Assembly (NCBI GenBank): GCA_010909165.1
Contig: VJWM01000044.1
Span: 1,674,001 to 1,738,000, forward strand
Direction: 5' to 3'
DNA length: 64,000 nt
From: Anthoceros angustus
Lineage: Eukaryota > Plantae > Anthocerotophyta
Below, one piece after another: positions 8,162 to 64,000 of this stretch. The notes under the pieces were generated by a model. It was not told the origin of the DNA, made no database searches, and saw only the letters and a program-made list of their open reading frames with translations. Position 1 is the stretch's first letter. The number at the start of each line of letters is the position of its first letter. Both the position numbers and the translations under genes were made by a program.

Positions 8162-10354
8162 ATGGCTCGCCAGAGGATTGCAGGTACAGGGCACAGGACT
8201 GTACAGGTGTCTCGTCCTCTAATGCAAAGTGCACGGAAAGCCCTTTGCAGAGACATGTTACAGCATCAGTCATTTTCTCCGATGCACAGGAATGAGATCC
8301 AAGAGCACGGCGAGAAAAGACGCGGCCTGGCTTCTGCTGGGAGGTCCTATGCTTCTTCTTAGCGCGGTCATCATCTTGAAGTACTCCTTACGTGACAATA
8401 AGGACATTCGAGGACCGGTACATTGCTTTCTACTCTCCAGATATAAGTGGACACTTGTGGTTCGCAAATGCTAGCTGAAAGGTTAACGTTCTCTCCGGCA
8501 AACTGCGACGGGCCCGTTTGCAGGATCTCGAAGGAATGCACCATGTGCTGGTAACTGGTGGGGCTGGGTATATAGGATCACACGCTGCTCTACGTTTACT
8601 GGAGGATGGTCATCGTGTCACGATTGTGGTATGTTCTTGGATCGAGGGATTCTGAAAGTCTGTTCTCTTTTGAGATACTGCTGATGATGTGGTAGCTAGG
8701 GCGCATGCTGCAGTAGATTGTTGCTGGAACTGAATCTGCCATGTTGGCGCTGCAGGATAATCTATCTCGTGGAAATCTAGGGGCAGTGCATATCCTGCAA
8801 AGTCTTTTTCCAGAGCCAGGGAGATTGCAGTTTGTAGATGCAGATCTTGGCGACAGAAGAGCTGTATCCTTGCCGTGCATACTGGAACGCTTGTACAGGA
8901 GTTTCCTGAAACTTGGGCAATTCTGTTTCATTTCTCACATGAGGTTCGAGATAGGTTCAGACCCTGTGCTTGGTTGCCTCAACACTGTTGAAACAGGTGA
9001 ATTCTGTCTTCGAGGAGAACAAGTTCGATGTGGTGTTACACTTTGCTGCAGTTGCTTATGTGGGAGAGAGTGTGGCTGACCCCCTCCGGTACGGTTTCTA
9101 ATTCTTCAGCACAAGTCCAGGTCCTCGCCTTGCAAGAGGCAGTGCAGATTGAGAACAGGGTCCAGCACAGTGATGTCTGTATTCAAATGACTCTAGCAGG
9201 TATTACCACAACATCACAGTCAACACTGTGTTGTTGCTAGAAGCAATGAACGCCACGAATGTTACCAATCTTATTTATTCCAGTACCTGCGCAACCTACG
9301 GGGAACCCAACGAAATGCCTATAACAGAGGAGACCCCTCAGGTCAGCTCTTCACATCGGGCGATGTGCTTCACTTTTTGAAGATGCTGACATCTGATGTG
9401 AGCTGCTGCTGATCACAATTTTGCAGGTCCCCATCAACCCGTATGGAAAGGCAAAGAAAATGGCAGAAGACATCATCAAAGACTATGCTCAGAACGGCAA
9501 GCTTGCAGTAACCATACTGAGGTGTGTGCAGATAGTGTGCAATCTACTGGTATACATTTCAATATTTGATACTGCAGTCTCGTACAGCTTTGAGCATGCC
9601 CTCTTCATCTGTTCCGTTCGTATGTGCAGATATTTCAATGTCATCGGCTCAGACCCAAACGGCAGGCTCGGAGAAGCACCAAGAACTGAGCTTCGTAGCC
9701 ATGGTCGTATCTCTGGGGCTTGCTTTGATGCTGCCTTGGGTCTCATTCCAGGGCTGACAGTAGGTTTCCAGATCACTTCTGATCCAGCATTGCCATCGAC
9801 TGTTATTTTATGCATCTCATTCAATACTAGGTGTACCCTGCAGTTGAAAGGAACCAATTATGAAACCGAGGACGGTACATGTGTGCGCGATTACATACAC
9901 GTGACGGATTTGGTTGATGCCCATGTGAAAGCCATGTCGAAGTTGGCCAGGAAGGAAGTTCAGGTTTACAATGTAGGCATAGGAAAAGGTATAAGTAGAA
10001 TTTATCATAATCTTACTTTCACAAATTGGCTTTTGTGCTTATGCCAGATACCGATCAGGTCTGATCACTGGAACACCCCTGTCTCTCTTTTCAATTGCAG
10101 GAAGCTCTGTGCGAGAGTTTATAGAAGCTTGTGAGGGTGTCACCGGTCAAAATATCACCGTCTTCCATGAAGAAAGACGAGCAGGGGACTACGCTAACGT
10201 GTATAGTGACCCCTCAAAAATCAGAGCTGACCTGGGTTGGACTGCAAGGTATACCGACCTGCAGGAGGGTTTGCGAACTGCATGGAACTGGAAAAGGACT
10301 CATCCCCATGGATACGAGTCAAGCCAATCCCTCAGCCAAGTTGTGTTGGTTTAG
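8162..10354 (+). CDS. MUR4: UDP-D-xylose/UDP-L-arabinose 4-epimerase (multi-exon)
   Basis: Spliced by eye with GT-AG introns: 8162-8183, 8290-8417, 8524-8628, 8756 onward, and further exons to the stop at 10354. It has an N-terminal TM segment, [37 protein letters not shown] (YxxxK), [10 protein letters not shown] and [18 protein letters not shown]. Confidence 0.95.
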
Positions 10355-14900: not shown

Positions 14901-15776
14901 TGAGGATCAGCGCCACTCCGGCAGCTTCGGCTGTGATGTCTGTCTCAGCTCTGGTATCATGTAAGTGTGATCGTGGAAGTACATGTTTTTCTGCAATACT
15001 GGCTGTGTGTATACTGGCTTTAGATTTTGAAAGAATGCTCTAGATTCTCATTTCTGCGGAGACCTGCAGTGTTGTTTTCTGCCCTCTGACCCTTGCTATG
15101 TGCAGAATGAAATACTCCAACCTTGCAAGCCTCATGGAGCACACACTCAGTTTTTTGAACTCCAATAAGCTTGCTGATCATCAGGGTTATGCCCGGGCAG
15201 TTTCTCACTTCCTGGAGTTGAGTTCATCTCCCTCGGAGGCAACTGAGCCTTGCAGTGCGGAGGTGAAGCAGGAGTTCAACTTGACAGCTGATGGTTCACT
15301 GACTCACCAGGTACTGGGGGGGGCTACTTGATAGATTCATTGTAGGTGCACAGAATGAGTTTCAGCATCCTACTTGCCTCACGTGATAGTGTCCTTCAAT
15401 CTTGCAGGCTATAGAGGATGCAGAAACTGTAGCCTCAAGGGCTTCGGAGGACACCCAAGTTCAGGAGGTAACAGCCTCAGGTTCTCTCTCGCATTAAGCC
15501 CATCATCTTCCTTTGGTTGGGTTGGTCATGCTGTGTTCAGCCCTGCATTGACTACTAATTGACTCAGAGGGGTTCTTGGTTGGGGCAACGGGAGTGGTTA
15601 GCCTTGGTAAATGGTAACCTTTCGTCAGGGTAACATCTAGCTGGCAACTAGGCAAGTGGGTGCCGTTATGCTTACCCATGTTCATCTAGATGAGGATTGT
15701 TCAGGAAAGGACTTTCCAGACCACAAATCCAAGGGTTCCCTACTGTCCGATCTCCAGCCTAATCAGCCCCCACTGA
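11941..15776 (+). CDS. Large intrinsically disordered protein (RG/RS-rich N-half, S/P/V heptad repeats) with a C-terminal XS-associated-type C2H2-like zinc finger
   Basis: 1007-aa ORF containing a likely in-frame intron (11993-12073). A donor after 14960 and acceptor before 15106 join FQLYTKLFKESTDWRKMYEDQRHSGSFGCDVC to KYSNLASLMEHT...DHQGYARAVSHFL, a C-x2-C...H...H pattern like plant At1g78810/At3g22430-type proteins. The last exons and the stop position are uncertain. Confidence 0.7.
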
Positions 15777-16934
15777 CTTCTAGAAGATAGAAGGCTTTAT
15801 CTTGAACTGTCGAGCCAGAAATATCTGGCGGAGGTCCCTAGAAATACCTGGCGGAGTGAATCCCTTGAGCATGTTTCCCTAAGGATGCACTGCTAGACTG
15901 TTCAGAAAACACTGCCTCTTTAGACCTTTGTTGAACTTTTTGGCCTGTGCTCCTTTCATACCTTTGAGCTGTATGCAGCTTTCCTCCCTTCAAACTTGTA
16001 AGGTCTACCACTTCCTTACCTTCCCCCAGCTGATCCAAGGCTCCTTTGGGCCTATCGACGTTGCCATGATCACATGATTTCATTCCCTCAAATGACCGAG
16101 ACGTTGCTTTTTGGCAGTTGATGGAGACATGACGTAAAAGCATTCAGTCACCTGATGTCCCCACTGAAGGACTGGGAGCAGTGTTTACATAACGTATACA
16201 TCTCCGACCCAAAAATCAGGCTGTTGTATGTTGGTCCTGCTACGAGTGCATTGGATCACATCATGGCTCAGCCAGTTGGGCCTTGGAACGACAAATTTCA
16301 TGTCATGCTAATTATCCTGACGCTCTGGACTACCGCACCTTGAACTTGTGAAGAGCCATTCTGTACTCTCATCTCTAACGTGTACAGAAAAAAGCCTATT
16401 CGACAATACGCTCCTCTGCTCCTATTCCGCTACAGGTCGTACAGGATGCACCCTTGCTGCTGCTGATCAACAAAACCCCTGCCGTCAATCCTCCCGAGTA
16501 CCTACCACCACCAGTGACCACCACCTCTCCGTGGATCGTCTGCGAGATCTTCAAATGCGTGCACGTACCGTGGATCGCGGTTCCCGAACGTAAGCTTTAT
16601 CTGAACAGACTTTAGGGAGACGGGAATAACTTTATCTGCCACGTCATGGGAGTACCGTCCGGTTGTGAGAGAGAATCACGGACTGTCGACTTGGCAGTCA
16701 CTGGGCCTTCTTCTCGCACACGCCCACACTAGCCTCCAGCACTTCCAGCCTTGGCGAGTCTTGATCCCTCGCCACTGACCGACAAAGGCTTCTCAACTCC
16801 GCTTCCACATCCATCGAGACCAGCAGCTAGCACTTGCGGTGAGCATCTGCGTCTCTGGTCCTGGTTCTGAGTCTGTTTATCCTTCTGAGGGCGTTGCGTT
16901 CTTGCGCTGGACGATATCGCGTGGAATTAGGACC

Positions 16935-17500
16935 ATGACGGGCTCTGGATCCCCCACAGCGACTCACCGGAAGGCCAAAAAGGGTGACGGTTCTGTTCGT
17001 CTGGACAAGCACTCAGGTGCGGTTGCCTATGCAGCCTTGTAGCATTGCTTGTAGCTATTTTTTGTGGAGGGAGAGCTTAATCCGATGTTCTACTTGTTCA
17101 GGAACAGGGAGGCCGGGCGGGGCGAAGAAAGGTACAGCACTTCAACAGCACCTAAGTATTATGTTTAGGTTGGAAAAGAAATGCGGTGCCCATTTTGATG
17201 ATACGTGATATGTGCAGGCGGTGCAGGAGGGAGCTACACATGGGGTGTTCCTGGCCAAGAGTTTCTGGACGGTGACGTTTCGGCACTCGATCGGAGCGAC
17301 CCGAACTACATGGACGAAGACGAGCTTGCAGCTACTGTAGACAAAGAGTACGTTGCCTTAACCTTCAGCAAGTTGGGTGCAAGTTGGCCACTTACAGGTG
17401 ATCGAAGGAACTTGTGTCCTTACATTGTCTGTGTTTCGGCAGGTCTATTGAAAAGGTTGAAGGTTCTGCTGAGCCTGTTGTTAAAGTAGTCGAAGACTAA
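16935..17500 (+). CDS. 99-aa small protein consisting of the PDCD4-N-terminal/Stm1/Tma10-like motif (4 exons)
   Basis: Exons 16935-17016, 17102-17131, 17218-17347 and 17443-17500 splice in phase with GT-AG sites. The product contains DKHSGTGRPGGAKKGGAGGSYTWGVPGQE...LDRSDPNYMDEDE. Confidence 0.85.
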
Positions 17501-33599: not shown

Positions 33600-36500
33600 G
33601 GGCAGGCAGAGGCAGAGGCAGAGGCAGAGGCAGAGGCACAGGCGCAGGCACGGGATGTACCTTTTTTTGAGGTTTGTAATAAGGAGTACGTAAGTGCAAG
33701 AGAAGAGAAGAGCCAAGGGAAAGGGAGGGAGGGAACTGAGAGGGACGAGGGTGCACATATCTCGAAAGGCAAGGTGCACATAATTGACCGGGGACACGAA
33801 TAGTTATTAATATCCCCCTCCGGGTCCGGGAGGCTTTATCCTGCGTATGTGCAGGGCGTGTCCCGGTTTGGGTCACCGAGATGGAATGTAATGTGTGCAT
33901 CAGCTTTTGCGCAGCGGCCAGTTGGGAGGGAGAATTGAAGGCCAAGAGGAGGAAAGGGAAAAAGAAAGCGAAGCAAGAAGTGGTGGTTCAGAAGTAAGAA
34001 GTGGGGAAGCGGGAGGGAGAGGGGGATAGGGCATCTGCGGCCTCGCGTTTCTAGATGGCTCTAGAACAAAGGAAGGGCGGGGCGTGGATATCCAGAGGGG
34101 AGGAGTAATTGGGGAGAGAGGGGCGGGAGGGAGAAGGAGAGGGGCCCAGGCCCAGGCCCATGTGGGCTCTGGCAGTGGGCAGCGCTGCGGATTTGTGTTT
34201 CCGAGAGGGAGTGTGGGGTGGCCCCGTTCCGTTGGGGGAGTCAGAGGGCGAGAGGGGGAGAGGGCGAGAGGGGGAGAGGGGGCGCAGGCGCACATGCCCC
34301 CGTTGAAGCGGCCAACGGGAATGTACAGAAATGGGGGAGGCGGGTGAATGTGGGGCACGCCAGCACGTCCCACGCACTATGCACTAAGCACTATGCACTA
34401 TGCACTATGCGCCAGAGGGCAGTGCCAGATCCACGCTAAATGGGGCTTGTCTCCTGCCCGAAGCGATTGCTATTGGCCTCCTCCTCAGCAGCCAGCCCTG
34501 GCCCCTGGCCTGGCCCGGGTGCGTGATGTCAGACGCGCCCCGGCAGGCGGCAGCGCCCCAAGACGAGCCAAGCCAAGCGAATAATACGCGCTGCAGCCGG
34601 ACGAGACGTCTGGAACATGAAGGGAGGAGAGAAAGATTCACGTCTCGCACGGGGCCGCGGTCGTGCCAGACTCTCCGGGGGGACTCGGGAGGCCCTTTCC
34701 TTTCCTTTACGTTCCTTTTCATTCCTTTCCGTTCCTTTCCGTTCCTTGGGCTTTCGCCCGCCTCTCCTCCTGTGCAGTGCGCTGGGCTTGCGCTGGTGCT
34801 GCGCTGTGTACAGTACCGGATTACGGCGATGCAAACGGGGCCCGGCACCGCAGCCTGGGTGTGCCTTGTGCCTGGCTATGGCTGCGCGCTCCGGATTCTT
34901 GGACACTCCATCATCACGTTTGTCTCACCTTTTGTACTTACCCCCGGCAAGGCAAGCAGAAAGCGGGGGCCGCATAAAGGAGCCACGAACAACAACAAAC
35001 AAGAACGGAAAGGGGCAGCAGTTGCCAATGCCGCTCCCCCTCCCCCTCCCCCTCTCGCCGGGGCTCTTTACCTCGTCCTGGGTCCCTGGGTCCGGAGTCC
35101 GGACTCCGGAATCCGGGCTTGGTCCTGGTCCAGGACGAGGTGGCCACTGGCTATGTGTGTAACGAGAAACAGTACAACAGCAGGATATCTCTGCACGCTG
35201 CACGCTGCACGCTGCAGGCTGCACGCTGCACGCTGCACTCTGCACTCTGCACTCTGCTCTCTGCTCTCTGCACTGTCCAGCCCTGCCCTGCCCTGCCCTG
35301 CACGCAGCAAATGCCGCAGCCTGCCGCCTGCAGCCTGCAGCCGCTGCTCTGCTGCAGCAGCGGCAGCGGCAGCAGCAGCAGCAGGACCAAGACCAGGACC
35401 AGGACCAGGACCAGGACCGGGACCAGGACCAGCAGGCCTACCAGCAGGAGCAGCACTGGCAGGAGTCGACTGGGCCGCAGGCCGCAGCGGCTAGCCATGA
35501 CTGCCAATCCCCATGGCCATTTGCCATATATTCCATATTCGTGTCAAGCGCCTGTGCCGACGTCCTCCTATTCGCTGGCGCTCGCATTGCAGCCGCACAC
35601 TGAACATGGGCCTGCCTTTGCACGTGGCTGCCTGGGGATTAGCGTTGCCCAGCCGTTGGCGGTCCGAACCTGCCTCTCCTCTCAAGTGCTCTGCCCTGCC
35701 CTGCCCTGCTGCCCTCTCTCTCTCTGTCTCTGTGTCGCCCATCGCCATAGCCCTTCAAACCTTTGCCATCACCAACACCGCGATACGATACGCCGTATGT
35801 ACCGCGCCTTCGATTCCTCGGGCTGCACACGCATACGTATGAATGTTGTGTGTGTGTGTTTACTCCTACCCACTTCCCCTCTTCCTTGGGCGACAGGGCA
35901 GGCCATGGCCATGGGCCATGAGCCATGGCATGGATGGAGGGCGGGGTGGATGGACCGGACTCCTCTCCTTTCCTCTCCTCTCCGAGTCCTCATCGCACTT
36001 GGAGTTGTCAACTGTGAGGAATCTGGGGCGGGGACAGCGTCATGCTGCCATCCCGAGCCGCACGCCTGTCTGCGTCGCGGGGGAGTCGGGACCCGCTCCG
36101 GGCCCGCACGTGCACGTAGTCGCCTCGACGGGCGTGCTCCTTCCTGCTCCTGCTCCCCGCCCTGGCAGTGGAGTCCGACTCTCTCCCGACTCCCGTTTTC
36201 ACATTTGCCCTGCTCGTCCTCGTCTCGGGACTGTTTCAACCCCGCCACTTCCTGCAACCAAAAGCAACCACGTTGGTCTCTGTATCCTCCGCTCTGTGCT
36301 GCCGCTGCAAGCAAGCGACTGGACTGGTATGGCAAGCGCGCGTCCTCAAGCAACCAAAGCACAGCAAGCAAGCAAGCAAGCCAAGGCACTGGCAGTAGAG
36401 GGAGGAAGGGAGGCAGGCTGGCAGGGTAGAGAGAGAGAGAGGGAAGGGCGGTAATACTAGAGTACGTTTTCATGGGGTGAAGGAAAGGAACCGGTAGCGT

Positions 36501-38230
36501 AACTGTAACCGACCCTGTTGTCAAAATTTCTCCTTTTCCTTCTCCTTCTCCTTCGCCTTCTCCTTCTCCTTCTCCTTCTCCTTCTCCTTCTCCTTATCCT
36601 TCTCGTTCTCGTTCTCGTTCCTTGTTGTTGGTGTTGAAGTTGCTGCCTGGCAGTCCCTGCTGTACATCGTGGTTGTAATGTAACTTTGTTGCTGTTGTTT
36701 TTGTTGTTCCTGTGTACACACTCTCTCACATAACATAAACACAGCTCTTGGTAGACACTGTTGCAAGAGTGCGTGTGTGTTTGTGCGTGTGTGTGTGCGC
36801 GCGCGCGAGGATGAGCTTGGTGTGGTGTGCCCAGTGGGCGGAGCAGTGCTGCCTAGGCCTGCCGGCTACTTCTGCCCACCTTCCTGCACCTACTGCACAC
36901 GCCAGAGAGCAACGCTTTCCTGTGCAGACGAAGACGCCTCACCTCCGGAGGCAGGACCCGCGGCCTAAGGGAGTAATGGCGAGGCTTGCCGCACGTTGAG
37001 ATGGGCGGGTCGGGTCGGGGCGGACATAGATAGATCCAACTGTAGGACATGACATGCGTACTGGGAAGTCTGGAACTGGAGAGAGAGTGGCAGGCCCTGA
37101 CCCTGGCCCTGGCCCTGGGGACCTGGGGTGCCGTGAGGTGAGGTGAGGGTAACTGAAATGGCGGAGGGCGGACTGGAATAGAAAGGCCCGGACGTGGTTC
37201 TCCGGCAGGGACGAGCCCCGCTGGGAGGGAGTGGGGTGACAGTGGCACCAACCGCGCGCAGCCGTCTCTCTAATTTAGCAGCCCGCACCGGCAGCAGACG
37301 CCGCAGCAAGGACACATGACAGCCAATTTGAAGTCGCGCGCCACTAATCCGCCATCGCTGTACAAAAGCAACTGGTAGCCCCGAGCTTACATGGGCCTCC
37401 ACACCCGCTTCTTCTGCTGTAGACATAACAGGCGCCGGGAGAGAGACAAGGCTTCCTTGCTCCACGCAACAACAACAACAACAACAACAACCACCGCGGT
37501 GGCAGCAGCAGGAGCACCATCAGGAGCAGGACCCGGAGCAGGAGCAGGACCCGGAGCAGGAGGAGCAGGAGGAGCAGGAGCAGGAGCAGGAGCAGGACCC
37601 GGACCCGGAGCAGCAGCAGCAGCAGGACCCGGAGTAGTTGGCTGCACCTCTGCCTGCCCCCGTGCGCCGCCGCGGTTGGCTTGCCTCGCATTGCCGCATT
37701 CATTCATCACTGCTTTGTAACTCCTCTGCTCTGCTCCCTAGGCCTTGCAACAGCTGCTCGTCCCTCAATCCATCCTCGCCGATCCGGGCGGCTTCCCCGG
37801 AGCTACCACCTACCTCTCCTCCTCCTACTTCCAACTCCTCCTCCTCCTTCCCACTGCCTGTTTGTGTCTCTCGTCTCTCTATCTGTCTGTTCACCTGCGC
37901 CCTTGCAGGCTGCTGCTGCACCTGCACCTGTCCATGGATCCGGCAGGCTGCGCGACAGTATCGCCTTGCTTGATAGGACCAGGCAACAGTAGCACGGGCT
38001 GATCACTCATCGCCAGATCCGATCTTGCTTGCTCCATTGTTTTCTTGCCGCACCTGCCTTTAGCTTTAGCGGCGCGCCTTAGCCTAGCCTACAGCTGCTA
38101 GCAGCTCCCGGGGCTGAGCTGGGCTGGGCTGGGCTGGGCTGGGAGAATTCTTGTGGAAATCTATGACTTGAGCGCAGCGCTGTGACTGTCCAATTGCACA
38201 GCGCAGCACAGCACAGCACAGCGCTGGAGA
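33600..38230. repeat. Long SSR/low-complexity regulatory region upstream of the ALOG gene
   Basis: It contains (GCAGAG)n, (GCACTAT)n, (GCACGCT)n, (GCCCT)n, (CCAGGA)n, (TTCTCC)n, (GT)n and (CAGGAG)n tracts. No domain-like ORF was found. Confidence 0.8.
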
Positions 38231-38364
38231 GAGGAGATGGTTCGTTCTTGTTGTTGAGGTTTGGCCCCAGGGTTTATCCGCCGGATTGTTGGCCGCCGTG
38301 TGACGCTTCCGAGGCACCTTCCTCCGCATGATCATCGTGATCATGTGTGACTGAGCACAAATTC

Positions 38365-39879
38365 ATGAGCGGTCCGGGCAGGCTTGCAGCTTCAGCAGGC
38401 GCAGGACAAGGACAACAGCAACAGCAGCAGCTAGGCGGGGGCGTGCAGGGACAGGGGCAACAGGCTTCATCGCAGAACAGCTCGGATTCCTCGATGCTTC
38501 TGGAACTCCCCTCCCACAACGTGGTAGGCAATACCGGCTTACTCACCCGATCTTCATCGCAGGGCCGACTGCACCAGTTCCAGCAGCAGCAGCAGCAGCA
38601 GCAGCATCAACAGCAGCAGCACCAGCAGCAGCAGCAACACCAGCAGCAGCACCAGCAGCACCAGCAGCAACTGCAGCAACAACACCAGCAGCATCAACAC
38701 CAGCAGCAGCAGCAGCTGCAAGGCAGCCTGCAGTCTCTGGGAGCCGCATCCGGCTCCGGCTATGGCGGATCGCCTCTGGCGCAGCTGGCGCACGTGCAGG
38801 ACCACCGACCCATCCAGCTCTCGGCATCGGAGCAGGCGCAGCTGCTCCACCAGGCCCGATCCGGGATGCAGCAATTCCACCACCTCTCCGGCCAGATGCC
38901 GTCACCGTCCTCGTACCACGGCGGCTCCCCTCACCTCCTCTCTTCCTCCGCCCTGCTCCGCCAGGCCTCGCAGCTGCACTACCCGCAGCAGCAGGCCAAT
39001 TCGCCCCCGGCTCAACTGCTAGGCTCGGTCCAGTCTCACCGCATGCACCAGGCGCACCAGCAGCAGATTCCTCAGCCGCAGCCTCCGCAAGCTCAGGGTT
39101 CAGGGGGTGGATTGATGCAAGGGCAGGGACCGGGACCAGGACCAGGACCAGGGCCAGGGCCAGGGCAAGCGCAGGGCCAGGGCCAGGGCCAGGGCGTGCA
39201 GCAGCAGCAGCCTGCGGCCCAACTGAGCCGGTACGAGAGCCAGAAGCGGCGGGATTGGCGAACGTTCGGGCAATACCTGCGCAACAGGCGGCCGCCGATC
39301 GCGCTCGGGAGATGCACGGGGGCCATTGTGCTGGAATTCCTGCGCTACCTGGACCAATTCGGCAAGACCAAGGTTCACATTCCCAGCTGCTCCTTCTTCG
39401 GGGTTATTGCTCCTCCCCAGCCCTGCTCCTGCCCGCTCCGCCAGGCATGGGGATCTCTGGACGCTCTGGTAGGCCGACTCCGTGCCGCATTCGAGGAGCA
39501 TGGCGGATCTCCGGAGGCCAACCCGTTTGGAGCCAGAGCGGTGCGGCTTTACCTGAGAGAGGTGCGGGACATGCAGGCCAAGGCCCGGGGCATCGCCTAC
39601 GACAAGAAGAAAAGGAAGCGACCTCCGTCGGGCCCGGGCGGGACCAGCGCAGCGGGAGGAGCTGCAGCTGCAGCACCAGATGCATCGGGTCCAGGCAGCA
39701 GTGGTGCAGGGGGATCCGGGGGCCAGCAACAACAACAACAATTGCAGCAATTACACCAGCAGCAGCAGCAGCAACAGCAACAGCAGCATCAGGGAGGGCC
39801 TTCGGGCAGCAGCAGCAGCTCCTTCGCTTCTGGCCCCCCCATGAGCACGTCGCCTGGACCTTCCACTCAAGAGCTGTGA
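38365..39879 (+). CDS. ALOG (LSH/G1) family transcription factor with long polyQ/GQ extensions, single exon
   Basis: [21 protein letters not shown]...[16 protein letters not shown]...[64 protein letters not shown]. The first ATG is at 38365 (the ORF track starts at a GTG). Confidence 0.97.
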
Positions 39880-52370: not shown

Positions 52371-53445
52371 TTTCTTGTCTCGGAATAGATGGGATTTCTC
52401 ATCTCTTTTTTAAGATTACATAAAAGTGTCCATTTAAACCTCTAACGAGAAAGTTTTCTTAGTTAGGCATACTTTTCTTTCTCATTATTTTTTTTCTTCC
52501 TTTTTAGCAAATTCAGAGACTTTATAGATATTTCAAAGTATTGATCGAAATCCCCTACTTAGTTTTTTTCATGTGGAGTAGCCCTGTAGGGCACTAACAA
52601 CAGATGACTCTGCACACTGCAAGGACAAGGGCAGGATTTTCATAACAAGTTACTTCGTTTTATTTTTACTCATGATTTTGACTATCATCCTTGTGCACTA
52701 CAACTCGACTGGCAACTTAGTATCTATCACCATTGCCATGTCTTTGAAACAATGGGCTTTATCATATTCCAATAGTGCCAGGTCACCACGATTGGGCAGA
52801 ATCGCCTAGCAAAGGAGTTAGGGGAAGTGCATGGCACTGGCGCATGTCCAAGTCATGCGCCCTGTATTTCTAACAAAACCCTACAAAGTAAGATTCCCCA
52901 CCCTCTTTCATTTTTCTCCCTCTTCATCCTACAACAATCATTACAATGAATTGTCCGAACCGTATATTAATCACCACCTCAAAGTCTTTCAAGTTCCAAA
53001 TCCATGTAAGCGACTAATTTTACACTTGTAATTATTTGCTACATATACATTGCTTTGTAGATGTCATGTTAATCCAAGTATAGATAATATGTTTATCATG
53101 ATTAGATATCATAAATTATTTTTAAATTCTTTTGATAAAATTTTTATACATAAATCTTAATTCATGAAGTTGGTTGATTGTAACCTACCCAAAACAATTA
53201 TAAGATCCAATATCATCACTCGACAAGGTATTGACAAGTCCACGTCTAATTTAATCAGAATCAACCTAACAAATTTAGAGGCTGTATGAAATGTGGCTGA
53301 TCTTCATAGAAGAGTGATTAAGATGCAGGATTAATACTAAGAATGAAAGGTGCATGTAAAAGACATATTTTTTGCAATGGGACCAGACAGTTGGCACAAG
53401 AACCTAAAATTTTGCAAGAAGAACAGTTCATCGACGAGCAGTTAT

Positions 53446-54207
53446 TTGGGAGCTTGACATTAAGGACGATTCACGTAGTTACTTGGGAGCTTGACATTAA
53501 GGACGATTCACGTAGTTACTTGGGAGCTTGACATTAAGGATGATTCACGTAGTTACAGTAGGCCCCCCCTAATTGGGAACTCTATAAATGGGATTCCTCT
53601 CTAACTGGGACCTCCCATCCTACTCCCTTTAGTTTACAATGTAACAAATGGGACTTTTCCCTAAGTGATAATTGGGACCTTTTCAAACATACATTCATGT
53701 TAGTTTCACCTCCCTAAATAGGGTTTCTAATTTTTTTTACTAAAACGAATTAAAAAAAGAAAGGAAAAAGAATCGATTATTTCAGAGCACAATAGACTTT
53801 TAGGTGTGATTAAAGACTCTTCAGCTAAGCTTTTTCCTTTATGATAGGTAGAGGTTTTTTTATGCTGCTTAGAGAGAGAGTGCTAGCTTTCAAACAACTA
53901 TATAGAGAAGTGATAAAAGTTATTTTTAGTGAAACCTATCAATCAAAATTGAAATTTTCCTTTTTTGGGTATTTTTGATTTTTTAAATTTGATCATATTT
54001 TTATTATTGTTAAATAGGGAAAATATAATCGGGACACCTCCCTTTATGAGACCTCTAAAGGCACTCCGAACCAGTCCCAATAAGGGGGGGTGGACTGTAC
54101 TTGGGAACTTGACATTAAGGACGATTCACGTAGTTACTTGGGAGCTTGACATTAAGGACGATTCACGTAGTTACGTGGGAGCTTGACATTAAGGACGATT
54201 CACGTAG
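53446..54207 (+). repeat. 37-bp tandem array (TTGGGAGCTTGACATTAAGGACGATTCACGTAGTTAC), 3+3 copies split by a MITE
   Basis: Copies start at 53446, 53483, 53520 and at 54101, 54138, 54175. There are no spacers. Confidence 0.95.
53556..54097. mobile_element. Tc1/mariner-type MITE, 542 bp, CAGT...ACTG ends, TA target-site duplication
   Basis: The TIRs are CAGTAGGCCCCCCCTAATTGGGAACT and AGTCCCAATAAGGGGGGGTGGACTG. TA flanks both ends (53554-55, 54098-99), and the array resumes exactly after the second TA. Confidence 0.85.
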
Positions 54208-54910
54208 AGCTTAAGGACTAACATGGACGTTTATAATTAGAAGCACTTGAGAACATGCTATACTGGTGCCTTGCTCAGTAGCTAGGCATTCTTTTCAGAG
54301 TTCGCGCGCGTGAAGCTTAGTGGGTGTAGATCTTGCAGTTCACAAACTTATTGGCTTTGTAGATTGAACATGAAACTATAGCGTGAACTAAGTAATTGAA
54401 ACATTTGAATTACATTGCACTCTTGTGTGTTTATGTGATGTTTGGATCAAAACAAGTCACGAGATTGTTTTTTGAACATAGCTAGATCAGCAAAAGGCAT
54501 CCTTACAATCAAAAGAATTAGCTTTGCTATGATGAGCTAACATCACTAACGGCTTGAGCAAAGCATGAGTGCAAGAGATGATGATGGATTGTGCGGAGAA
54601 ATTTATGTTATCTTTGAACCCATACTTAGTAGGAAGACTAGTGAATTTTTGAAACAAAATACAAATAGAGAAAGAAAGGGGAAATGCGAGTGGAAGCAGC
54701 GTCGAAATTGGAGGAAAGGACTGAAGGAAGGCGCAAGTCACTCAGGCGAAGCACCCTCACGTTGGAGAAAAAGGAGAGAAGAAGCGGGTGGGAAGCAAGC
54801 CAGGGCTAACCTTGAGATTGTGTGATAGAGTTGCTTTCCACCAGGGGTGTTTTCTGGGCTGAGACACTAGAAGGGCGAGACAACTCGCAATTGGGGAGTA
54901 GCTCACTTCC

Positions 54911-55980
54911 TTGGCAGCATTTTGCGTGAAAAGGCGCCATGCCTCGGCTGCTAAGGCGGGGAAGGAACCGGCCAAGGGCTCGTCCTCAAGAGGAGGAAAA
55001 AGCGGGCGGCGAGGCTGCGCCGGAGGAGAAGATTTTGAGATGCCACAATTTACGTGCTGCGGGCAGCTCAATCCCAGGGACTTGGTGGATTTTAGGCAGT
55101 GGGCGGAAGAGGAGAACATCCAATTGGGATGGGTGTATGGCCGCCAGTGGGCCTACACCAATTTGGAATTGATTGAGGAGTGCTACATCAACCTCCATCA
55201 ATCGGAAGCAGCCCTTGCCGCGTTGCTTGCGGAGAGGAATGCTCGGACTGATCCTCGCTGCTGGACAGTGAGTATTTGTTAGGTGTATGGGAGATCGGAG
55301 GAGGAGAGCTCAGGAATTGCTCTCCTCGAGAGGACAAATGAAGAAAAGAGGATTTCCCTCTCCGAAATTCCGCAGGAGGTCCTGGATGTGATGGACGGAG
55401 GAGTGAAGGCCCACGCCAAGAATGGCTGGAAGACGGACAGTATCAAGGAGCTGAAGTAGAGGCTCTTTGCCAAAATTGTGCTGGGGTTGGCGAACTATCA
55501 ACGGACCTCTTATTTCAGCACCAACTTCCTCCAATTTTTGTGGAAGATTCTAGAGGCCAAGCCGGATTGGGGCACAATAATGTATGAGGCCTATATCCAT
55601 CACAAGGAGAAGCTCCTTAGGCCAAATTTTGTGGATGAAGAGGGGCCAAGGCCATGCTACCTCAGCACCTATTTGGTGCATTTGTGGGAGACGGAGGGGC
55701 TCCTAACCAGCAAGGAGCTTGAGGATGCTTGGCATCCTTTCGAGATTATCCACCTCCAGCCAAGCTTAGAGCGACCCTTGCCTTTCGCTCTAAGGAAGAC
55801 CATGGGAGGACAAACCTCCACAAGCACCCCAGGACCGAGAGCGGAGGAGGTGGAGGCAACGAGGTTGCCGAAGTGGGAGGCCTTTCCCCCACAAGAGCCA
55901 GGAAGAGAGGAGCAAAATCCGGCCATAGAGGGCCAGGTGGTAGTCTATGAGGGGACTACCACCGAGGGGGTGATGTGACC
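54911..55980 (+). mobile_element. Degenerate transposon-associated accessory ORF
   Basis: One reading frame with scattered stops: ...YTNLELIEECY...LFAKIVLGLANYQRT...KPDWGTIMYEAY...CYLSTYLVHLWETEGLLT. It resembles retroelement extra ORFs; the family assignment is an inference. Confidence 0.4.
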
Positions 55981-58243
55981 CCAAGGGTGGGAGGAGTCCC
56001 CACCATTTCGTGGGTGCCTAGGAAGAGGCACCCGGTGAGGTGTGGAGGGAAAACCCCGGGGCTTCCGAGGCTTCCCCCTCTAGCGGCCACGCTTATCCCT
56101 TTGTCGTTTCGTTTGTTGGGTTTCGTCCCATGAGACTTGTGTGAAAGATCTGAGTCTTGTGGAAAACAATCGCTACCTATAGTGACACAACTTCTCAGCC
56201 TTTTTAACAAGCAAGGCGCCCTCTACTCTCCCTCTTACAGCAGCTACACCACTTGCACTGCTCCGAAAAATCAGCAATCCTCGACCTACAACGACGCAAC
56301 ACAATTGCAGGTCCTGCCTTAGCAGCGAGGAGCCTATCACGGGCGCTCAGGGACCCCCTGACCCACACCGCAATTTCGTCCCTACTTCTAAGACCAATCT
56401 TCTCCACTCAGGGAGCGCCCTTTTACTTGCAGATTTCGGATTCGTCCCTTAGGCTCTGCCTGTGGCCTTCCATTAACACCTACACTCTAATCCTCTACTC
56501 ATCTCCTCCTCTTCCTCCTATTCTAACCTCAGTTCGGGCTTACTAGCCTCGGCTCGTCCTTACGGCACAACTGCCTGGGGTCGGCCTCCACCAGCAAGTT
56601 CTTCCTTGGGCCGGTTGCAATGAGTTTGACACTGACAATGAGAACCTGTGGAGTCTTTCCTGTAGTCTACCCTCAAGCCGAGAGTTCCACAGGCATTGCC
56701 ACACACCCAAAGCAAAGCAATTTCACGAACTAGTTATTCACAAGGAGCAACTCGTTTAGGCACTTCGAGGAGCAAGCCTCCACCAAGCACTCGACCACCG
56801 CGACTTTCTCTCTACGGACTGCGTTAGCTCCACACGAAATTCCTTTACAAGGGCAAAGGACTCATGAGTATGGAAGCGCAAGACGTGATACTTTACTTTG
56901 TGAAATCCTCCTCCTCTTATGAGGCCTATATCCATCAAGGAGAAGCTCCTTAGGCCAAATTCGTGGATGAAGAGGCCAAGGCCATGCTACCTCGCACCTA
57001 TTTGATGCATTTGTGGGAGGCGGAGGGCTCCTAACCAGCAAGGAGCTTGAGGATGCTTGGCATCCTTTCGAGATTATCCACCTCACCAAGCTTAGAGCGA
57101 CCCTTGCCTTTCGCTCTAAGGAAGACCATGGGAGGACAAACCTCCACAAGCACCCCAGGACCGAGAGCGGAGGAGGTGGAGGCAACGAGGTTGCCGAAGT
57201 GGGAGGCCTTGCCCCCACAAGAGCTAGGAAGAGAGGAGCAAAATCCGGCCATAGAGGGCCAGGTGGTAGTCTATGAGGGGCAGACTACCACCGTAGGGGT
57301 GACAGCCCCAAGGGTGGGAGGAGTCCCCACCATTTCGTGGGTGCCTAGGGAAGAGGCACCCCGGTAGGGAGGTGTGGGAGGGAAAACCCGGGGCTTGAGG
57401 CTTCCCCCTCTAGCGGCCACGCTTATCCCTTTGTCGTTTCGTTTGTTGGGTTTCGTCCCATGAGACTTGTGTGAAAGATCGGAGTCTTGTGGAAAACAAT
57501 CGCTACCTACAGTGACACAACTTCTCAGCCTTTTTAACAAGCAAGGCGCCCTCTACTCTCCCTCTTACAGCAGCTACACCACTTGCACTCAAAAATCGCA
57601 ATCCTCGACCTACAACGACGCAACACAATTGGGTCCGCCTTAGCGAGGAGCCTATCACGGGCGCTCAGGGACCCCCTGACCCACACCGCAATTTCGTCCC
57701 TACTTCTAAGACCAATCTTCTCCACTCAGGGAGCGCCCTTTTACTTGCAGATTTGGGATTCGTCCCTTAGGCTCTGCCTGTGGCCTTCCACTAACACCTA
57801 CACTCTAATCCTCTACTCATCTCCTCCTCTTCCTCCTATTCTAACCTCAGTTCGGGCTTACTGGCCTCGGCTCGCCCTTACGGCACAACTGCCTGGGGTC
57901 GGCCTACACACCAGCAAGTTCTTCCTTGGGCTGTAATGAGTTTGACACTGACAATGAGAACCTGTGGAGTCTTTCCTGTAGTCTACCCTCAAGCCGAGAG
58001 TTCCTCGGCATTGCCACACACCCAAAGCAAAGCAATTTCACGAACTAGTTATTCACAAGGAGCAACTCGTTTAGGCACTTCCGTGAGCAAGCCTCCACCA
58101 AGCACTCGACCACCGCGACTTCCTCTCTACCAGACGCTGCGTTGGCTCACAGCCGGCACGAAATTCCTTTACAAGGGCAAAGGACTCGCGAGTATGGAAG
58201 CGCAAGACGTGATACTTTACTTTGTGAAATCCTCCTCCTCTTA
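55585..58243 (+). repeat. ~1.33-kb tandem duplication (55585-56920 / 56921-58243)
   Basis: Both copies start GAGGCCTATATCCATCA and end GTGAAATCCTCCTCCTCTTAT. They differ mostly by small indels. Confidence 0.9.
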
Positions 58244-58881
58244 TAGGAGGCCTTCCACATACAACCTCCCTCGGGTGACCCTTCTGCAGGTCACCTTTTC
58301 CAATATCCTATTATTTCCTACCACCAGCATTTAAGGCCTAGCATCTAAGTCTACTGTCTGATTCTGGGTAAATTCTATTCTAGCAACTTCACCTAAGATC
58401 ATCCTTAAAGGATGTCAGTCTATCTCACCTATCCTTCCTATTCTCTCCTAGTTCATTTATGGCCTTTGACCATACCTAGTCCTAATCCTGCTGAGGTAGG
58501 GACGCGTCTCCTGTGGATTGGCTCTCTCGCCCTCTTTTTGCTCCTAACAGCATAATATTTGAAGCGGCTGAATATACAAAGCCGCTTCTGCAGAAAAAAA
58601 ACCAACTGCTGGAAAACATGGTGGGCACTGAATTCCACGATTTCCACGTTTTAATTTTCTTGGTGATGGTTCATTCCCTCCCTTCCCTACGGCATCAGCT
58701 ACTTTTCACATCGAGTGCGCACGGTTATGGTCGTAGTGTGCCCGAAAGGCCCCCAATGGTCTTCCGCGATATTGGTGAGCTTGTCGATCGATTTCACACC
58801 TACTTGGAAAGCAATACATAGCACTAAAAGCAATAAAAGATTAAAGGAATGTTTGCGGCGGCATGCGGCCTGAAAAGGTTT

Positions 58882-61350
58882 CTAAGTCGACACGCAATGT
58901 AACGAAATTTCCAATAACCTAACTACCAAAATCTTCGCCGGCTTGAGTCTCGGGTGGGCATTGCCCGACACGCTATCGAACACAACATCAACGCTTCGAG
59001 GAGGCGTTGTCGGGGTCCTCGAAGTTGTCGTTCTCGCATGGCATTCTCCACATCCAAGAGACGAGGAGGACTGGGTGTTGTAGTCTGATGGCACACGCTC
59101 CGTAGTTCTCCGCCCGTCATCAAGGATTTGCCCGTTTTCTCTTTCATCTGTTGAACCCCAAAGGTACGACTGTGCTATGAGTGACCCTTCTGACAAGCTT
59201 AATTCCTTTGCCCAGAATTGGGCAGGTCCTCGTCGGTGTGGCTCATGATTCAATTCCTCCTCAGCGTCTGGAAGTACCTCATATCCATGTATCCTTTGGG
59301 GAATGAATTCCGCACATCGTTTGTCCAAGTCCACGGCGATGCAATTGCGGCCACATAGCAGCGCTGCTAGGGTTGTCGTCCGCTTCCTGCACACGCATCT
59401 AATATCCAATCTCCTTCTTTGGAGAAGTTGTTGATCATCTTCTGCATCAACCCTAATGGCCTCTGATAAGCACATACCACGAGCTTGTCCAATGACATAT
59501 AAAGAAGCTTCTTGACGACAGTGTTGTGCCCAATGACTGCGCGACCATTATTGAACGAGCCAAGGACGGTGTTAGGTAACATTGAAACCTTGTTCTTCTT
59601 GCTGCCTGTAGTTACCCCCCACCCTACCGTGATGTACTCGACGGTATCATATCCACCTTGATCATTATGCATGTTAGTTTTGTCCCATACGAAGGAGACC
59701 ATCCCTCCACCAGTGCACCACTGTCGCATAGCCTCCCTCACAGTGTGCAGCTCTTCCACCCCATGCATAAATATCATGCGGATTTCCTCACAGCTCGTCA
59801 TGTCATGGAAAGAGTGAAATCATGCCCATCGTGTTTGGTCCATCTTTACATCATGCTTTCCTTGTTGAATCCCACAGGCACATCCATAACCAATAAAGTG
59901 TAATTCCTCTTAGTAAAACCCTCGGATGTCCAACACATCTCTCGCAACCACTTGGTATTTCACGATACACTCCGTCGTTGGAACAGTGAACGACTGCAGG
60001 CCTTCTTCCATGTCCATGTCAGCTAGGGTCCTTTGTTCGTTCTCCAGACCCTTCCATGTGTGCACTTCGATGAAAGCACGGAAGTCCTCGTAGTTTTTCA
60101 AATCCGCACATCTTTCACTTGCGCACCACCTTCCTCATCATGCATGCTTTTCCGCTTCTCATGGCCCCGACGCCTTCCCCACCCTACCTGTTGTTACAAC
60201 CAAACGAAAGGAAATGGTGGGGAGAGGGCGCCGGCATGCCGGCGCCTGTCCCCACTCCAATGAGTCTTAAAACAAATGACACGTACCTTTCCATCGAACG
60301 CTGTTTGAAACCGTGCAATAACATCATCCGAAGAGTGCATTGGGTATTCCTGCCTAACCATCTCGAAGGAGTCACATCCTAAGTGTTTCGCCATCGCCAC
60401 TTGGATGACATGAAGTTTCTTCCGCAGTATCACCTCCTTGGACATACCATTCAGGTCTAGTAAACCTGTCAAAACCTTTTCTCACACTAATCAGCATTTT
60501 CTCCCCTCCGGTGGAATTCCTTGAAGCTGCGCCATGGTTTCCTTGCATCTCTTTGGGCTTAACAAAACGCTTTCCAGTCTTCACCTCTTCTCCAACTGCG
60601 TTTGCCCTTGCTCTTCTTGCTAGTACTGCAACATGTTTGGCCCGCGAAGTTCCATCGCCTCCCACTTGGTGAAGATCGCCCACGTTTTCCCACACCTTTC
60701 CCTCCAGTTTGCTATGCATAGTATATGTGTCCGGTTGTCCACTTTGTTTTGCTTGTATTGCTCATCTTCCCGACCTTCGTCATCCTCTATCAGCCCAAGC
60801 ACCTTGTATAAATTGAACTTCCAGTTCATGCTCATTGTCACACCATCCCGCTTTGCAATCAAGTTCATCCACAGGTATCGACCTGCTCGATAAAGTTCAT
60901 CTTTTTCCTCTTGTCCGACATTGTGTTGTGGTCGGGTTGCGAACTCGCATCTCTGTAGAGTTAGCCCGCAATAGACATGGGCCTCCATCCATTGGAACCT
61001 TGCCTTCCCGGTGATATATCCGCAAGTCGCTTCATGGCGGCGTAAGTATGATTGCCTCCCAAGACCCCATAATATACTTCTTTGCGGAACTTTTCCGGTC
61101 TAATGTTTTGATATCCTGCGATCGGATGGGTCAATCATACAAAGCAAAGGCAGACACCTTCTTCAATACGACCCTTGAGATGACGCGAGCGTAGTTCGCC
61201 CAAGCCTCATCCACTTGACGAACCCGAGCATCCGAGTTAGAAACGGCGCCTCAAATTCTCGACGAGTAATCGCTTCGCACCACCTTCTTCGCATATGCAG
61301 ACTCACGACTTTCGCAAATAATCCTCATGCATCATAGACGCTTCGGTCTT
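58882..61350 (-). pseudogene. Frameshifted gene encoding a ParB/Srx-like domain plus a beta-class N6-adenine/N4-cytosine DNA methyltransferase (N6_N4_Mtase-like)
   Basis: ParB-like motifs: RVRQVDEAW (61226-61200), YYGVLGGNHTYAAMKRL (61074-61024) and AHVYCGL...HN. MTase motifs in beta order: YTLLVMDVPVG (motif IV-like, 59884-59870), FVWDKTN...VEY, YQRPLGLMQKMINNFSKEGDWILDACAGSG(T)TTLAALLCGRNCIAVDLD. A GT-AG intron lies at ~60285-60187. Confidence 0.8.
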
Positions 61351-61459
61351 TCTCCATCTGTTGAGACATGCAATGTTGGAATCTCATTGTTGTCGGTTCC
61401 CTTGGGACGCTTGAACTTTTCCGCTGCTCCTATCGAACGCGTTCCGCACTCCGGGACTG

Positions 61460-64000
61460 CTGCCCACCACCTTCCTCATCATGCATGCTTTTCCGCTTCT
61501 CATGGCCCCGACGCCTTCCTCCAACCGCAAGCCACAGGTTTTCTGGCGCGGCATGCCCCCTCTTCCGCCTCCTCCACTCCGCAGGGCGCGGCATGCCGGC
61601 GCCCCCTCTTCCGCCTCCTCAGAGGAGGCGGCATGCCGGCGCCCCCTCTTCCTCCTCACCATAGTCGAGGGCGCGGCATGCCGCCTCCCCTCTTCCTCCT
61701 CATCATGCATGCTTTTCCGCTTCTCATGGCCCCCTCTTCCTCCTCACCATAGTCGAGGGCGCCGGCATGCCCCCGGCGCCTCTTCCATGTAGCACAGGGA
61801 CTCCTCCCATGGTGCTTGGATGGCGACGACCTTGGAAGGAATCCGTAGCCGCAGCAAACCTCCCTCCATCACCCTCAGCCTCCCCATCATCCTCTTCAAA
61901 TGCCTCCGCATCCGAATGACCCAGAACTGGAATAGGCCCATCCTCCTCATCAAGGTCCGAACTGCCTCATTGTCTTCTACTTCCAAAGGCGAGTTTGGAA
62001 GTCCTGTCTTGTCCTCCTCGGTGACATCTCTCGATGACGGATAATGGAGCTCGTAATCACCTCACACAAGCACCAGAAATGTTCTCTCACTCATCATCAA
62101 AGAAGCACCGGGTCAACAATGCAATCAACGGTGGCGAATGCCTGGAATTAAGAAGTGTACTCACATTCTCAGCTCAACGCTGCTCGAAAAGTGCTGGACA
62201 ACTCCTTTGGCTCACATTTCTTCCTGTGCAAACATGCCACTTTCAACAGATACAGTGTAATCATCATCGACGATGCGGCAATGCGTCCACTTCATAAGGC
62301 CTTGAAGTGCAAAGAATCCAGCCTGGGTCTCGCCGCCCTCTTCCTCCTCACCATAGTCGAGGGCGCGGCATGCCCCTCTTCCTCCTCACCATAGTCGAGG
62401 GCGCCGGCATGCCGGCGCCCCCTCCCCTCTTCCATGTAGCACAGGGACTCCTCCCATGGTGCTTGGATGGCGACGACCTTGGAAGGAATCCGTAGCCGCT
62501 GCAGCAAACCTCCCTCCATCACCCTCAGCCTCCCCATCATCCTCTTCAAATGCCTCCGCATCTGAATGACCCAGCAACTCTGGAATAGGCCCATCCTCCT
62601 CATCAGAAGGTCCGAACTCTGCCTCATTGTCTTCTACTTCCAGTGCGAAGTTTGGAAGTCCCTGTCTTGTCCTCCTCAGTGACATCTCTCGGCGATGACG
62701 GATAATGGAGCTCGTAATCACCTCACACAAGCACCTGTAAAATGTTCTCTCACTCATCTCCACACCGTTATTCAATGCAATCAACGCTGGTGGCGAATGC
62801 TCTGGAATTAAGAAGTGTACTCACATTCTCAGCTCAACGCTGCTCGAAAAGTGCTGGACAACTCCTTTGGCTCACATTTCTTCCTGTGCAAACATGCCAC
62901 TTTCAACAGATACACAGTGTAATCATCTGACGATGCCGGCAATGCGTCCACTTCATAAGGCCTTGAAGTGCACAGAATCCGCAGTTCTGGGTCTCGCTGC
63001 CCTCCATCCAAAGTTGCCCAGGACCCATCCCGCCTTGCTCTCTGGTTTGCGGTGCACCGTTGAACCCAAAACCCAAAGCTTGATCGGGCGTCCATAGCAG
63101 TTTCTTCATCCGGCTCCTCCGTTTATGTCAACAACCATTCCTGCTGCAGAAGCATAGTGTCCTCAAGCTGGTTCATGTGCCTCCGCAGCATGCCTCCTCA
63201 TACGAGTATGGGAGGGAATTGATCTGGATTTCCCACCCTCAATCCTTTGGACAAGCTGGACTTCTCTCCACCACCAACTGTCTTTGTGGTGCTTGCCTTG
63301 AATTGAGTGACCGGACTTTGTCCGCCTCTTCCTGCTCCACCTCCACCTTGCTCAATTGGTTGGAAAGCATGTCCAGCCCCGAGGCGTAGATCGATCCGCG
63401 GAGGATCCGTGGTTCTCGATTTCGCCTCCTTCTTGCTTTTAGATTTCTTCGCCTCCGCGGCTTCTCAACAAGTCTCCGTGGTTAGGCCTCGCATCGGGAG
63501 GTCCTTCATCACGGCCCGCCATCATCCGTAGCCGCAGCAAACCTCCCTCCATCACCCTCGCCTCCCCATCATCCTCTTCAAATGCCTCCGATCCGAATGA
63601 CCCAGAACTCGGAATAGGCCCATCCTCCTCATCAAGGTCCGAACTCGCCTCATTGTCTTCTACTTCCGGTCGAAGTTTGAAGTCCTGTCTTGTCCTCCTC
63701 GGTGACATCTCTCGATGACGGATAATGGAGCTCGTAATCACCTCACACAAGCACCAGAAATGTTCTCTCACTGTCCATCACAGCAGCATAAGCATCAATG
63801 CAATCAACGGTGGCGAATGCCTGGAATTAAGAAGTGTACTCACATTCTCAGCTCAACGCTGCTCGAAAAGTGCTGGACAACTCCTTTGGCTCACATTTCT
63901 TCTGTGCAAACATGCCACTTTCAACAGATACAGTGTAATCATCCGACGATGCGCAATGCGTCCACTTCATAAGGCCTTGAAGTGCAAAGAATCCAGCCTG
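61460..64000 (-). repeat. Nested imperfect tandem repeats (~650-bp and ~1030-bp periods plus ~45-bp subrepeats) encoding acidic peptides, upstream of the ParB-MTase ORF
   Basis: CAAACCTCCCTCCATCACCCTC occurs at ~61855, ~62505 and ~63538, and GATAATGGAGCTCGTAATCACCTCACACAAGCACC occurs three times. The region runs off the window edge. Confidence 0.85.

Follow-up and report, generated by a model that had tools for sequence, protein, structure and literature searches.

Does the minus strand at 58882-61350 of this 64,000-nucleotide stretch of Anthoceros angustus DNA (the whole stretch that was analysed, referred to below as the window) carry a working gene for a DNA-modifying protein, or only what is left of one? 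A first-pass annotation, made from the letters alone, had proposed an intron-containing eukaryotic gene in which a ParB-like domain is joined to a beta-class amino-DNA-methyltransferase (MTase), possibly as a transposon-borne modification module. Three-frame translation of 58800-61420 confirmed that all of the minus-strand fragments behind this proposal are present, in the order in which they were listed. The pieces are collinear, fall in three frames and match a small family of eukaryotic proteins in which a conserved N-terminal domain (N-domain) is followed by a long linker and then by a beta-class N6_N4 DNA methyltransferase. The evidence presented here indicates that the stretch is very probably what remains of an accessory gene from a family of cut-and-paste DNA transposons in streptophytes, decayed and without function. 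We therefore regard it as a fossil of a transposon accessory gene of a kind already known, found here in a new host lineage, and not as a working or new system.

The methyltransferase half

To describe the MTase, we used a profile hidden Markov model (HMM) of the family that was built without the window and searched against the 2806 stop-to-stop pieces of the whole window. Three collinear matches were obtained. Reading along the minus strand, the first (59959-59849, E 1.3e-4) is the piece that contains motif IV, in frame 0 (YTLLVMDVPVGFN), which is cut short by a stop at 59848. The second (59819-59370, E 7.7e-38) is the MTase core in frame 2, with VWDKTN...YQRP...ILDACAGSG. The third (59547-58885, E 9.5e-14) covers the end of the MTase and the C-terminal tail, which are read in frame 1 at 59378-58882 (TTLAALLCGRNCIAVDLDKRC...LPDAEEE), up to a stop at 58882; all references give high-scoring segment pairs in frame -2 in this part. 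Motif I, which binds S-adenosylmethionine (AdoMet), retains CAGSG, and the frame is broken directly after it, at 59379 (GSG/T). Every tblastn alignment to a reference that extends past this point switches frame there, which confirms the break in motif I noticed in the first-pass annotation. In family members the MTase is circularly permuted, with motif IV first and YQKP...DWxLDxxxGSGT last, and this order holds in the window, where motif IV is N-terminal to motif I.

One 144-aa fragment scores 25.0 bits (E 2e-5) against PF01555, a little short of the cut-off of 26.7, as is to be expected of about a third of the domain; intact relatives clear the threshold with 30-66 bits. An exhaustive phmmer search with a 150-aa piece against 1.84 billion representatives found no more than 18 proteins at E <= 1e-3, led by one with E 1.5e-13 and 47% identity, and tblastn of 18+ family members on the window reached E values down to 7e-25.

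The window departs from the canonical motif IV, (D/N/S)PP(Y/F/W), and reads DVPVG at 59884-59870. The Val in place of the conserved Tyr had been taken as a possible lesion of this particular copy. However, a contig from X1, a 98-Mb DNA run of the same organism, covers motif IV with DVPVG codons identical to those of the window, and the Val is thus not private to the window copy. Since another copy has DVPVG and the nearest relatives (P0002, P0003, P0006 and L004) have DLPRG, the loss of the aromatic residue is a feature of the whole lineage; more distant members have DIPYG, DFPYG or DIPHG. Loss of this aromatic residue argues against canonical catalysis in amino-MTases, and even intact members of the lineage with DLPRG or DVPVG may not methylate canonically. 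The nearest solved sequences to the family MTase, with P0007 as the query, are DpnA / M1.HpyAVI (5hek, E 5e-5) and CcrM (6pbd, E 1.4e-3). For intact members, the earlier preference for N6-methyladenine (6mA) over N4-methylcytosine (4mC) survives as a reasonable guess from the Asp-type motif IV and from these adenine MTases as the nearest solved relatives.

Relatives of the gene

Relatives were found in Chara, Ginkgo and other samples, and they are eukaryotic. They include Ginkgo biloba Gb_37443 (P0012) and four further Ginkgo models, and the N-domain of P0007, a 789-aa metagenomic protein, matches four Chara braunii proteins with 41-56% identity. The four closest proteins (P0001, P0002, P0003 and P0006) all come from divergent contigs of one sequencing run. 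The order of N-domain, linker and MTase is found in the full-length relatives P0007, P0027 and Ginkgo P0012/P0023, and the Chara locus L006 has an N-domain and an MTase end across a frameshift. The linker of the family is roughly 250-300 residues long and has conserved IFxMW...VKG and PW...LSLxEM blocks. Maximum-likelihood analysis separates the eukaryotic family from three phage MTases with support of 87/91, but does not firmly place the window within the family.

N-domain and linker

Frameshift-aware alignment shows that the window follows the order of the full-length relatives throughout, from N-domain through linker to MTase. The first N-domain piece, in frame 2 (ARVRQVDEAWANY, 61250-61134), contains RVRQVDEAW; it was matched by eye in the three-frame translation and lies just upstream of the pieces matched by the N-domain HMM. 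It is followed in frame 0 by LPLLCMIDPSD (61162-61103), aligned to LPFVGVIDPRQ of P0007 (HMM positions 48-59), and in frame 1 by the core YYGVLGGNHTYAAMKRL with its GGxH motif (61134-60964), aligned to YTVWIVGGGHSREARERL of the family (HMM positions 73-95). The end of the domain, HVYCGLT, is continuous in frame 0 with the first half of the linker, IFTKWEAMELRG (61099-60623), and an overlapping frame-1 piece at 60960-60868 carries DHN. In the N-domain HMM search, these last two pieces come out on top in the window, at E 0.021 and E 0.17 respectively; the two before them are also within the top seven, weakly (E 3 and 3.2) and with the profile order kept. The residues that are invariant in the family N-domain are D, Y, G, E, R, L, CxVYxGLT, E and HN. 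Two of them are replaced in the window, where GGGHSREAR of the family reads GGNHTYAAM, the E and R after GGxH having become A and M.

The second half of the linker (60620-60287) passes through frames 1, 0, 2 and 0 as KPWR, QLQGIPPEG, EKMLISVRKG and LDLNGMSKEV...FQTAFDGK, as seen by tblastx and by alignment to P0007. Two related loci, L003 and L004, have 44-53% identity to the linker at 60421-60278 in tblastx, and an upstream open reading frame (ORF) of L003 aligns to 60880-60647 when the references are searched against the window with tblastn.

The identification of this region as a ParB core stands as far as the place and order of the pieces are concerned, and is statistically unproven as regards ParB itself. 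Several results weigh against this part of the interpretation. The family N-domain has no Pfam match to ParB_N, and DUF6551 is found only below threshold (E 0.003-0.012) and only in three near-identical Ginkgo paralogues. An AF2 model of the N-domain from a 9-row alignment has a predicted local distance difference test (pLDDT) score of 53, too poor for a fold search. Comparison by hhalign with nine phage ParB-N domains, taken from ParB-MTase and ParB genes, gave a non-significant E of 0.24, and comparison with one phage ParB-N sequence was not significant either. Searches with the family N-domain found nothing in PHROGs and NCBIfam, a PDB sequence search with its profile was likewise empty, and there was no meaningful match to phages. 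The register of the hhalign alignment is nevertheless that expected for ParB, with GGGHSRE on GGHQR, CxVY on CxVV and HN on LN, and the language-model (embedding) neighbours of the N-domain are DUF3723, ParB_N and DUF6551 clusters at 0.90-0.95. On this motif-level and embedding evidence, it is plausible that the N-domain is the ParB-like DNA-binding part of the protein, which agrees with the published description of the algal proteins discussed below. With residues 105-330 of P0007, its N-domain, as the query, fungal DUF3723 clusters come closest by language-model embedding (0.93-0.95). One of them has a predicted structure similar to ParB N-terminal domains, with a template modelling (TM) score of 0.4-0.6, which hints that DUF3723 may itself be ParB-like.

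A conserved intron

The first-pass annotation had placed a GT-AG intron at about 60285-60187. Its donor is well supported: the GT at 60286 (GTACGT) is at the exact position of canonical introns in L003 and L004. In the window it is preceded by FQTAFDGK. The counterpart in L003 is FQLSFANV, followed by GTGAGT...TTGTTTTGTGCCAG (748-946), after which the frame of P0006 continues; in L004, GTAAGT and an intron of about 600 nt come directly after FQLAFKGI. P0007 and P0027, which are single-ORF calls, read straight through this position. These comparisons show that the intron is real and lineage-specific, which rules out contamination and upholds the view of a eukaryotic gene.

The acceptor, by contrast, more likely lies near 60118 than at 60188, because homology to exon 2 of L003 restarts only at about 60119 and because 60120-60252 aligns as a single unit of the repeat array 5' of the gene. 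Within this unit, the 59-nt block 60120-60178 is 98% identical to 61461-61519, and 60227-60246 is a perfect copy of a palindrome that is otherwise found only 5' of the gene. The intron would then span 60286-60118, and no in-frame canonical acceptor (AG) survives near the latter position. An intron end at 60188 is rejected, as it would add 23 repeat-derived codons and still require a frameshift. Exon 2 begins in frame 2 with DLKNYEDFRAFIEVHTWKG (60104-59913), which matches exon 2 of L003 and to which P0006 aligns from 60068, starting at its residue 34.

State of the copy

Frameshift-aware alignment to P0007 or P0027 with a strict penalty requires 7 frameshifts and 3 stops. With the intronic ones (2 frameshifts and 1 stop) set aside, at least 5 frameshifts and 2 stops are left. 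A permissive setting, which follows short conserved blocks, gives 18 frameshifts and 4 stops, about a dozen of them outside the intron. The suspicion that this copy is inactive was therefore correct; noise in long reads as the main cause of the frameshifts is not supported, given their number, the intact host genes in the window and the different indels of other copies. The host ORFs are 1044, 1007, 621 and 510 aa long and belong to proteins of the MAX2-like F-box, ZTL-like PAS/F-box/Kelch and ALOG types, and since they are intact, the assembly is not generally noisy. Long CAG/CAA/GAC-rich coding repeats of the poly-Gln type occur at 35327-38745, in and before the ALOG-domain ORF (38347-39879).

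The gene family is multicopy in the source genome. As many as 64 short X1 contigs match the stretch with 90-99% identity, several of them overlapping and with indels of their own. One of them, over 59642-59911, has lost single bases at places where the frame of the window is open, and six contigs lack one base at 60465, the exact site of a frame change in the window. Different copies are thus broken in different places, as would be expected of a family of decaying repeats. No RNA run was found to contain the stretch, and the only one of the sample, a small run (X2), gave no match to it, which is weak negative evidence. The window copy is dead: it lacks the open frame across exons of a functional protein-coding gene, and no transcripts of it were found in that run.

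Transposon context

That the gene is transposon-borne is borne out in relatives. The most informative is L002 (1-8915), a JGI metagenome contig of 8915 bp with an apparently complete 8.85-kb element bounded by terminal inverted repeats (TIRs). The repeats form a 28-nt pair, 96% complementary, at 20-47 and 8844-8871 (8796 nt apart), and enclose a 580-aa DUF7869 protein (E 3e-50), two ORFs of 385 and 243 aa and, encoded on the other strand, the 789-aa P0007, whose gene is intronless and has DFPYG. None of the four ORFs is a capsid or packaging gene, and the flanks show no clear-cut target-site duplication. Neighbours of the DUF7869 protein are eukaryotic clusters with predicted structures like those of ISAzo13 and IS630 DDE transposases. 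Short inverted-repeat arrays lie within 350 bp upstream of the MTase gene of L002, and again beside the transposase unit; inverted repeats of the GACCGATAGCGATATACG type are present in both intergenic regions. Because Chara proteins are 41-56% identical to its N-domain, the source of L002 is probably a charophyte.

The linkage is repeated in Chara braunii, where L006 (BFEA01000138.1) has a frameshifted P0007 homologue and, at a distance of 8 kb, homologues of both the 385-aa and the DUF7869 protein. In L006, GACCGATTACGTAATCGGTC palindrome arrays at 14238-17474, situated 2 kb downstream from the ParB-like-MTase gene, form 114-nt inverted repeats around a 2.7-kb segment with a 583-aa ORF; the segment could belong to the same element or represent a second one.

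Palindromes also surround the gene in the window. The 20-nt perfect palindrome GGCGCCGGCATGCCGGCGCC and its degenerate copies give five pattern matches, all within 60227-62419, versus 0 expected. The sites are at 60227-60246, 61555-61790 and 62336-62419, with a perfect copy at 62400-62419, so that all of them cluster around the gene's 5' half, in a span of 2.2 kb. Those at 61555-61790, just 5' of the gene, form an array of degenerate copies (Tandem Repeats Finder: period 40, 3.6 copies), and one palindrome-bearing unit sits inside the intron at 60252-60120. These palindromes are possible binding sites for the N-domain, by analogy with the inverted-repeat arrays next to red-algal ParB-like genes. 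Other repeats of the region are units of about 650 bp, in three or more copies that are 88-100% identical in blocks, from upstream of the gene to the window end (61771-64000); two tandem copies of a sequence of about 1.32 kb immediately downstream of the gene (55697-58250; 97-100% identical in blocks); and, in an AT-rich stretch, two arrays of a 37-nt tandem repeat, 655 bp apart, at 53406-53589 and 54061-54244 (about 3 copies each, 97% matches).

Some observations count against a transposon origin of the local copy. No transposase homologue was found by tblastn in the 64-kb window, and the window, which ends 2.6 kb upstream of the gene, contains neither inverted repeats that bracket the gene nor a target-site duplication; we infer membership in a transposon from the relatives. 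The type of transposon is also less than certain, since the label Sola1 is taken from a published design and the ISAzo13-like fold of the DUF7869 transposase could equally suggest Zator (PMC10045372).

Alternative explanations

Could the stretch instead be a host gene that is still alive, such as a domesticated sperm-type DNA methylase, with frame breaks that are assembly errors in a hard-to-polish repeat? The conserved intron would fit such a gene, the break in motif I is a one-base difference, and six X1 contigs lack one base at 60465, where the window changes frame, so that one break or more must be either an error or peculiar to this copy. However, there are too many breaks even by the strict count, residues that are invariant in the family N-domain have been replaced, and the frame-breaking indels of the X1 contig over 59642-59911 make decay a property of the family. 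In addition, the gene is multicopy, its neighbours are intact and the sample's only RNA run has no match to it, all of which makes a live gene very unlikely. We consider it slightly less probable still that the stretch is the remnant of an integrated virus-like element, such as a Polinton-like or giant-virus insertion. Viruses often carry N6_N4 MTases, a literature search for the N6_N4_Mtase domain name returned a preprint on Polinton-like viruses, and the window has no transposase; yet the complete relative L002 is an 8.9 kb element that is bounded by TIRs and encodes a DDE-type protein, without any capsid or packaging gene, and the transposase linkage recurs in Chara L006.

That the sequence is a bacterial or phage contaminant, or a phage ParB-MTase gene acquired very recently by horizontal transfer, has a negligible probability, even though the family MTase aligns full length with MTases of 569 phage records (24-28% identity) and phage fusions of ParB_N and N6_N4_Mtase beside terminase do exist, e.g., Javan69_0014. 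The position of the spliceosomal intron is common to three loci, the gene is embedded among plant genes (ZTL-like, MAX2-like and ALOG) on the contig, and its nearest relatives, in Ginkgo and Chara, are eukaryotic. Moreover, the window piece itself reaches only E 8e-3 against phages by tblastn, over motif I alone, and the eukaryotic family is set apart from the phage MTases in the tree. Contamination is thereby refuted for the local copy, and an ancient prokaryotic or phage origin of the family is likely. A decayed transposon gene remains by far the best explanation of the locus.

A model for intact members

For the accessory gene of the transposon family, the intact ancestor would have encoded roughly 700-800 residues, in which a long helical linker joined a probably ParB-like N-domain of the pattern GGxH...R...CxVYxGLT...HN to a circularly permuted beta-class amino-DNA-methyltransferase. 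Intact relatives have the gene inside TIRs, beside short inverted-repeat arrays and on the strand opposite a DDE (DUF7869) transposase. The N-domain may bind the element's own palindrome arrays, and the MTase may mark element DNA, more likely at adenine N6 than at cytosine N4. The local copy, with one conserved spliceosomal intron and many frame breaks and stops, does nothing. An unlikely variant is that intact members are a repurposed MTase-fold protein, i.e., an AdoMet-dependent binder or an enzyme with another substrate, with the ParB-like domain targeting the GC-rich palindrome arrays of the element and some copies possibly active as a self-marking system. The variant is prompted by a stable non-canonical motif IV, D-L/V-P-R/V-G, from which the aromatic residue is missing in four divergent relatives and in two or more copies of the genome studied here.

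With a DNA-modifying enzyme of its own, a transposon could mark itself or gain protection from silencing by the host, an idea so far raised for algae. Copies from Chara to Ginkgo, and now in this seedless plant, show an old design that is widespread in the plant lineage, with an intron and an odd catalytic motif acquired in its land-plant versions. The local copy itself is junk, and its value is that of one data point for a family-level census.

Comparison with known systems

Phage ParB-MTase fusions belong to the ParB-terminase loci reviewed by Iyer et al. 2016 (PMC4738411), a review that lists no land-plant clade of this kind. The full-length alignment of the family to phage MTases fits the origin from such loci discussed there. 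Javan69_0014 of a Streptococcus phage has the same domain order and the same beta-class MTase fold (PF01555, 100 bits) and adjoins terminase genes, with ParB_N just under the Pfam cut-off (24.9 vs 26.3 bits). In contrast to the family described here, phage ParB-MTase proteins are without introns and without the linker of roughly 300 residues, and they have a canonical motif IV; identity in the MTase is only 24-28%, and the similarity between phage ParB-N and the family N-domain is not significant. Among bacterial enzymes, the N6-adenine beta-class MTases DpnA / M1.HpyAVI and CcrM are stand-alone proteins with the canonical DPPY, and the similarity to them is remote.

Bacterial-type PF01555 amino-MTases with introns are also known from eukaryotic nuclear genomes. 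MpDN4MT1a/b of Marchantia, which have TSPPY and are highly expressed, and N4CMT of bdelloids are host-recruited enzymes shown to make 4mC, whereas members of the present family have D-x-P-x-G, are multicopy and transposon-linked, and are known from sequence alone. Also transposon-borne are the Plavaka accessory genes PAG2/PAG3 of the red alga Bostrychia, which are ParB-like and N6-adenine-methylase-like and have tandem arrays of inverted repeats beside the ParB gene (bioRxiv 10.1101/2025.02.11.637652), much as palindrome arrays are found beside the gene in the window and in L002. In those KDZ/Plavaka elements, however, the methylase is fused to SET and the ParB-like part to a 2-oxoglutarate (2OG) oxygenase, while here the ParB-like part and the MTase are one protein, in an element with a DUF7869 transposase.

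The closest published design, and the reason why the system itself cannot be called new, is that of the Ectocarpus transposon Sola1-1_Ec32, for which a ParB-like plus DNA methyltransferase accessory gene was published in 2025 (Genome Biol, PMC12477816). The comparison is one of published description and layout, not of sequence. The brown-algal element is 21.5 kb long and its protein has 1104 aa, compared with about 9 kb and 670-860 aa for the streptophyte relatives, and the local copy differs from it in being dead and without a transposase. The layout is nonetheless the same as in L002: in both, the accessory protein is encoded on the strand opposite the transposase, inside a DNA transposon bounded by TIRs (PMC12477816).

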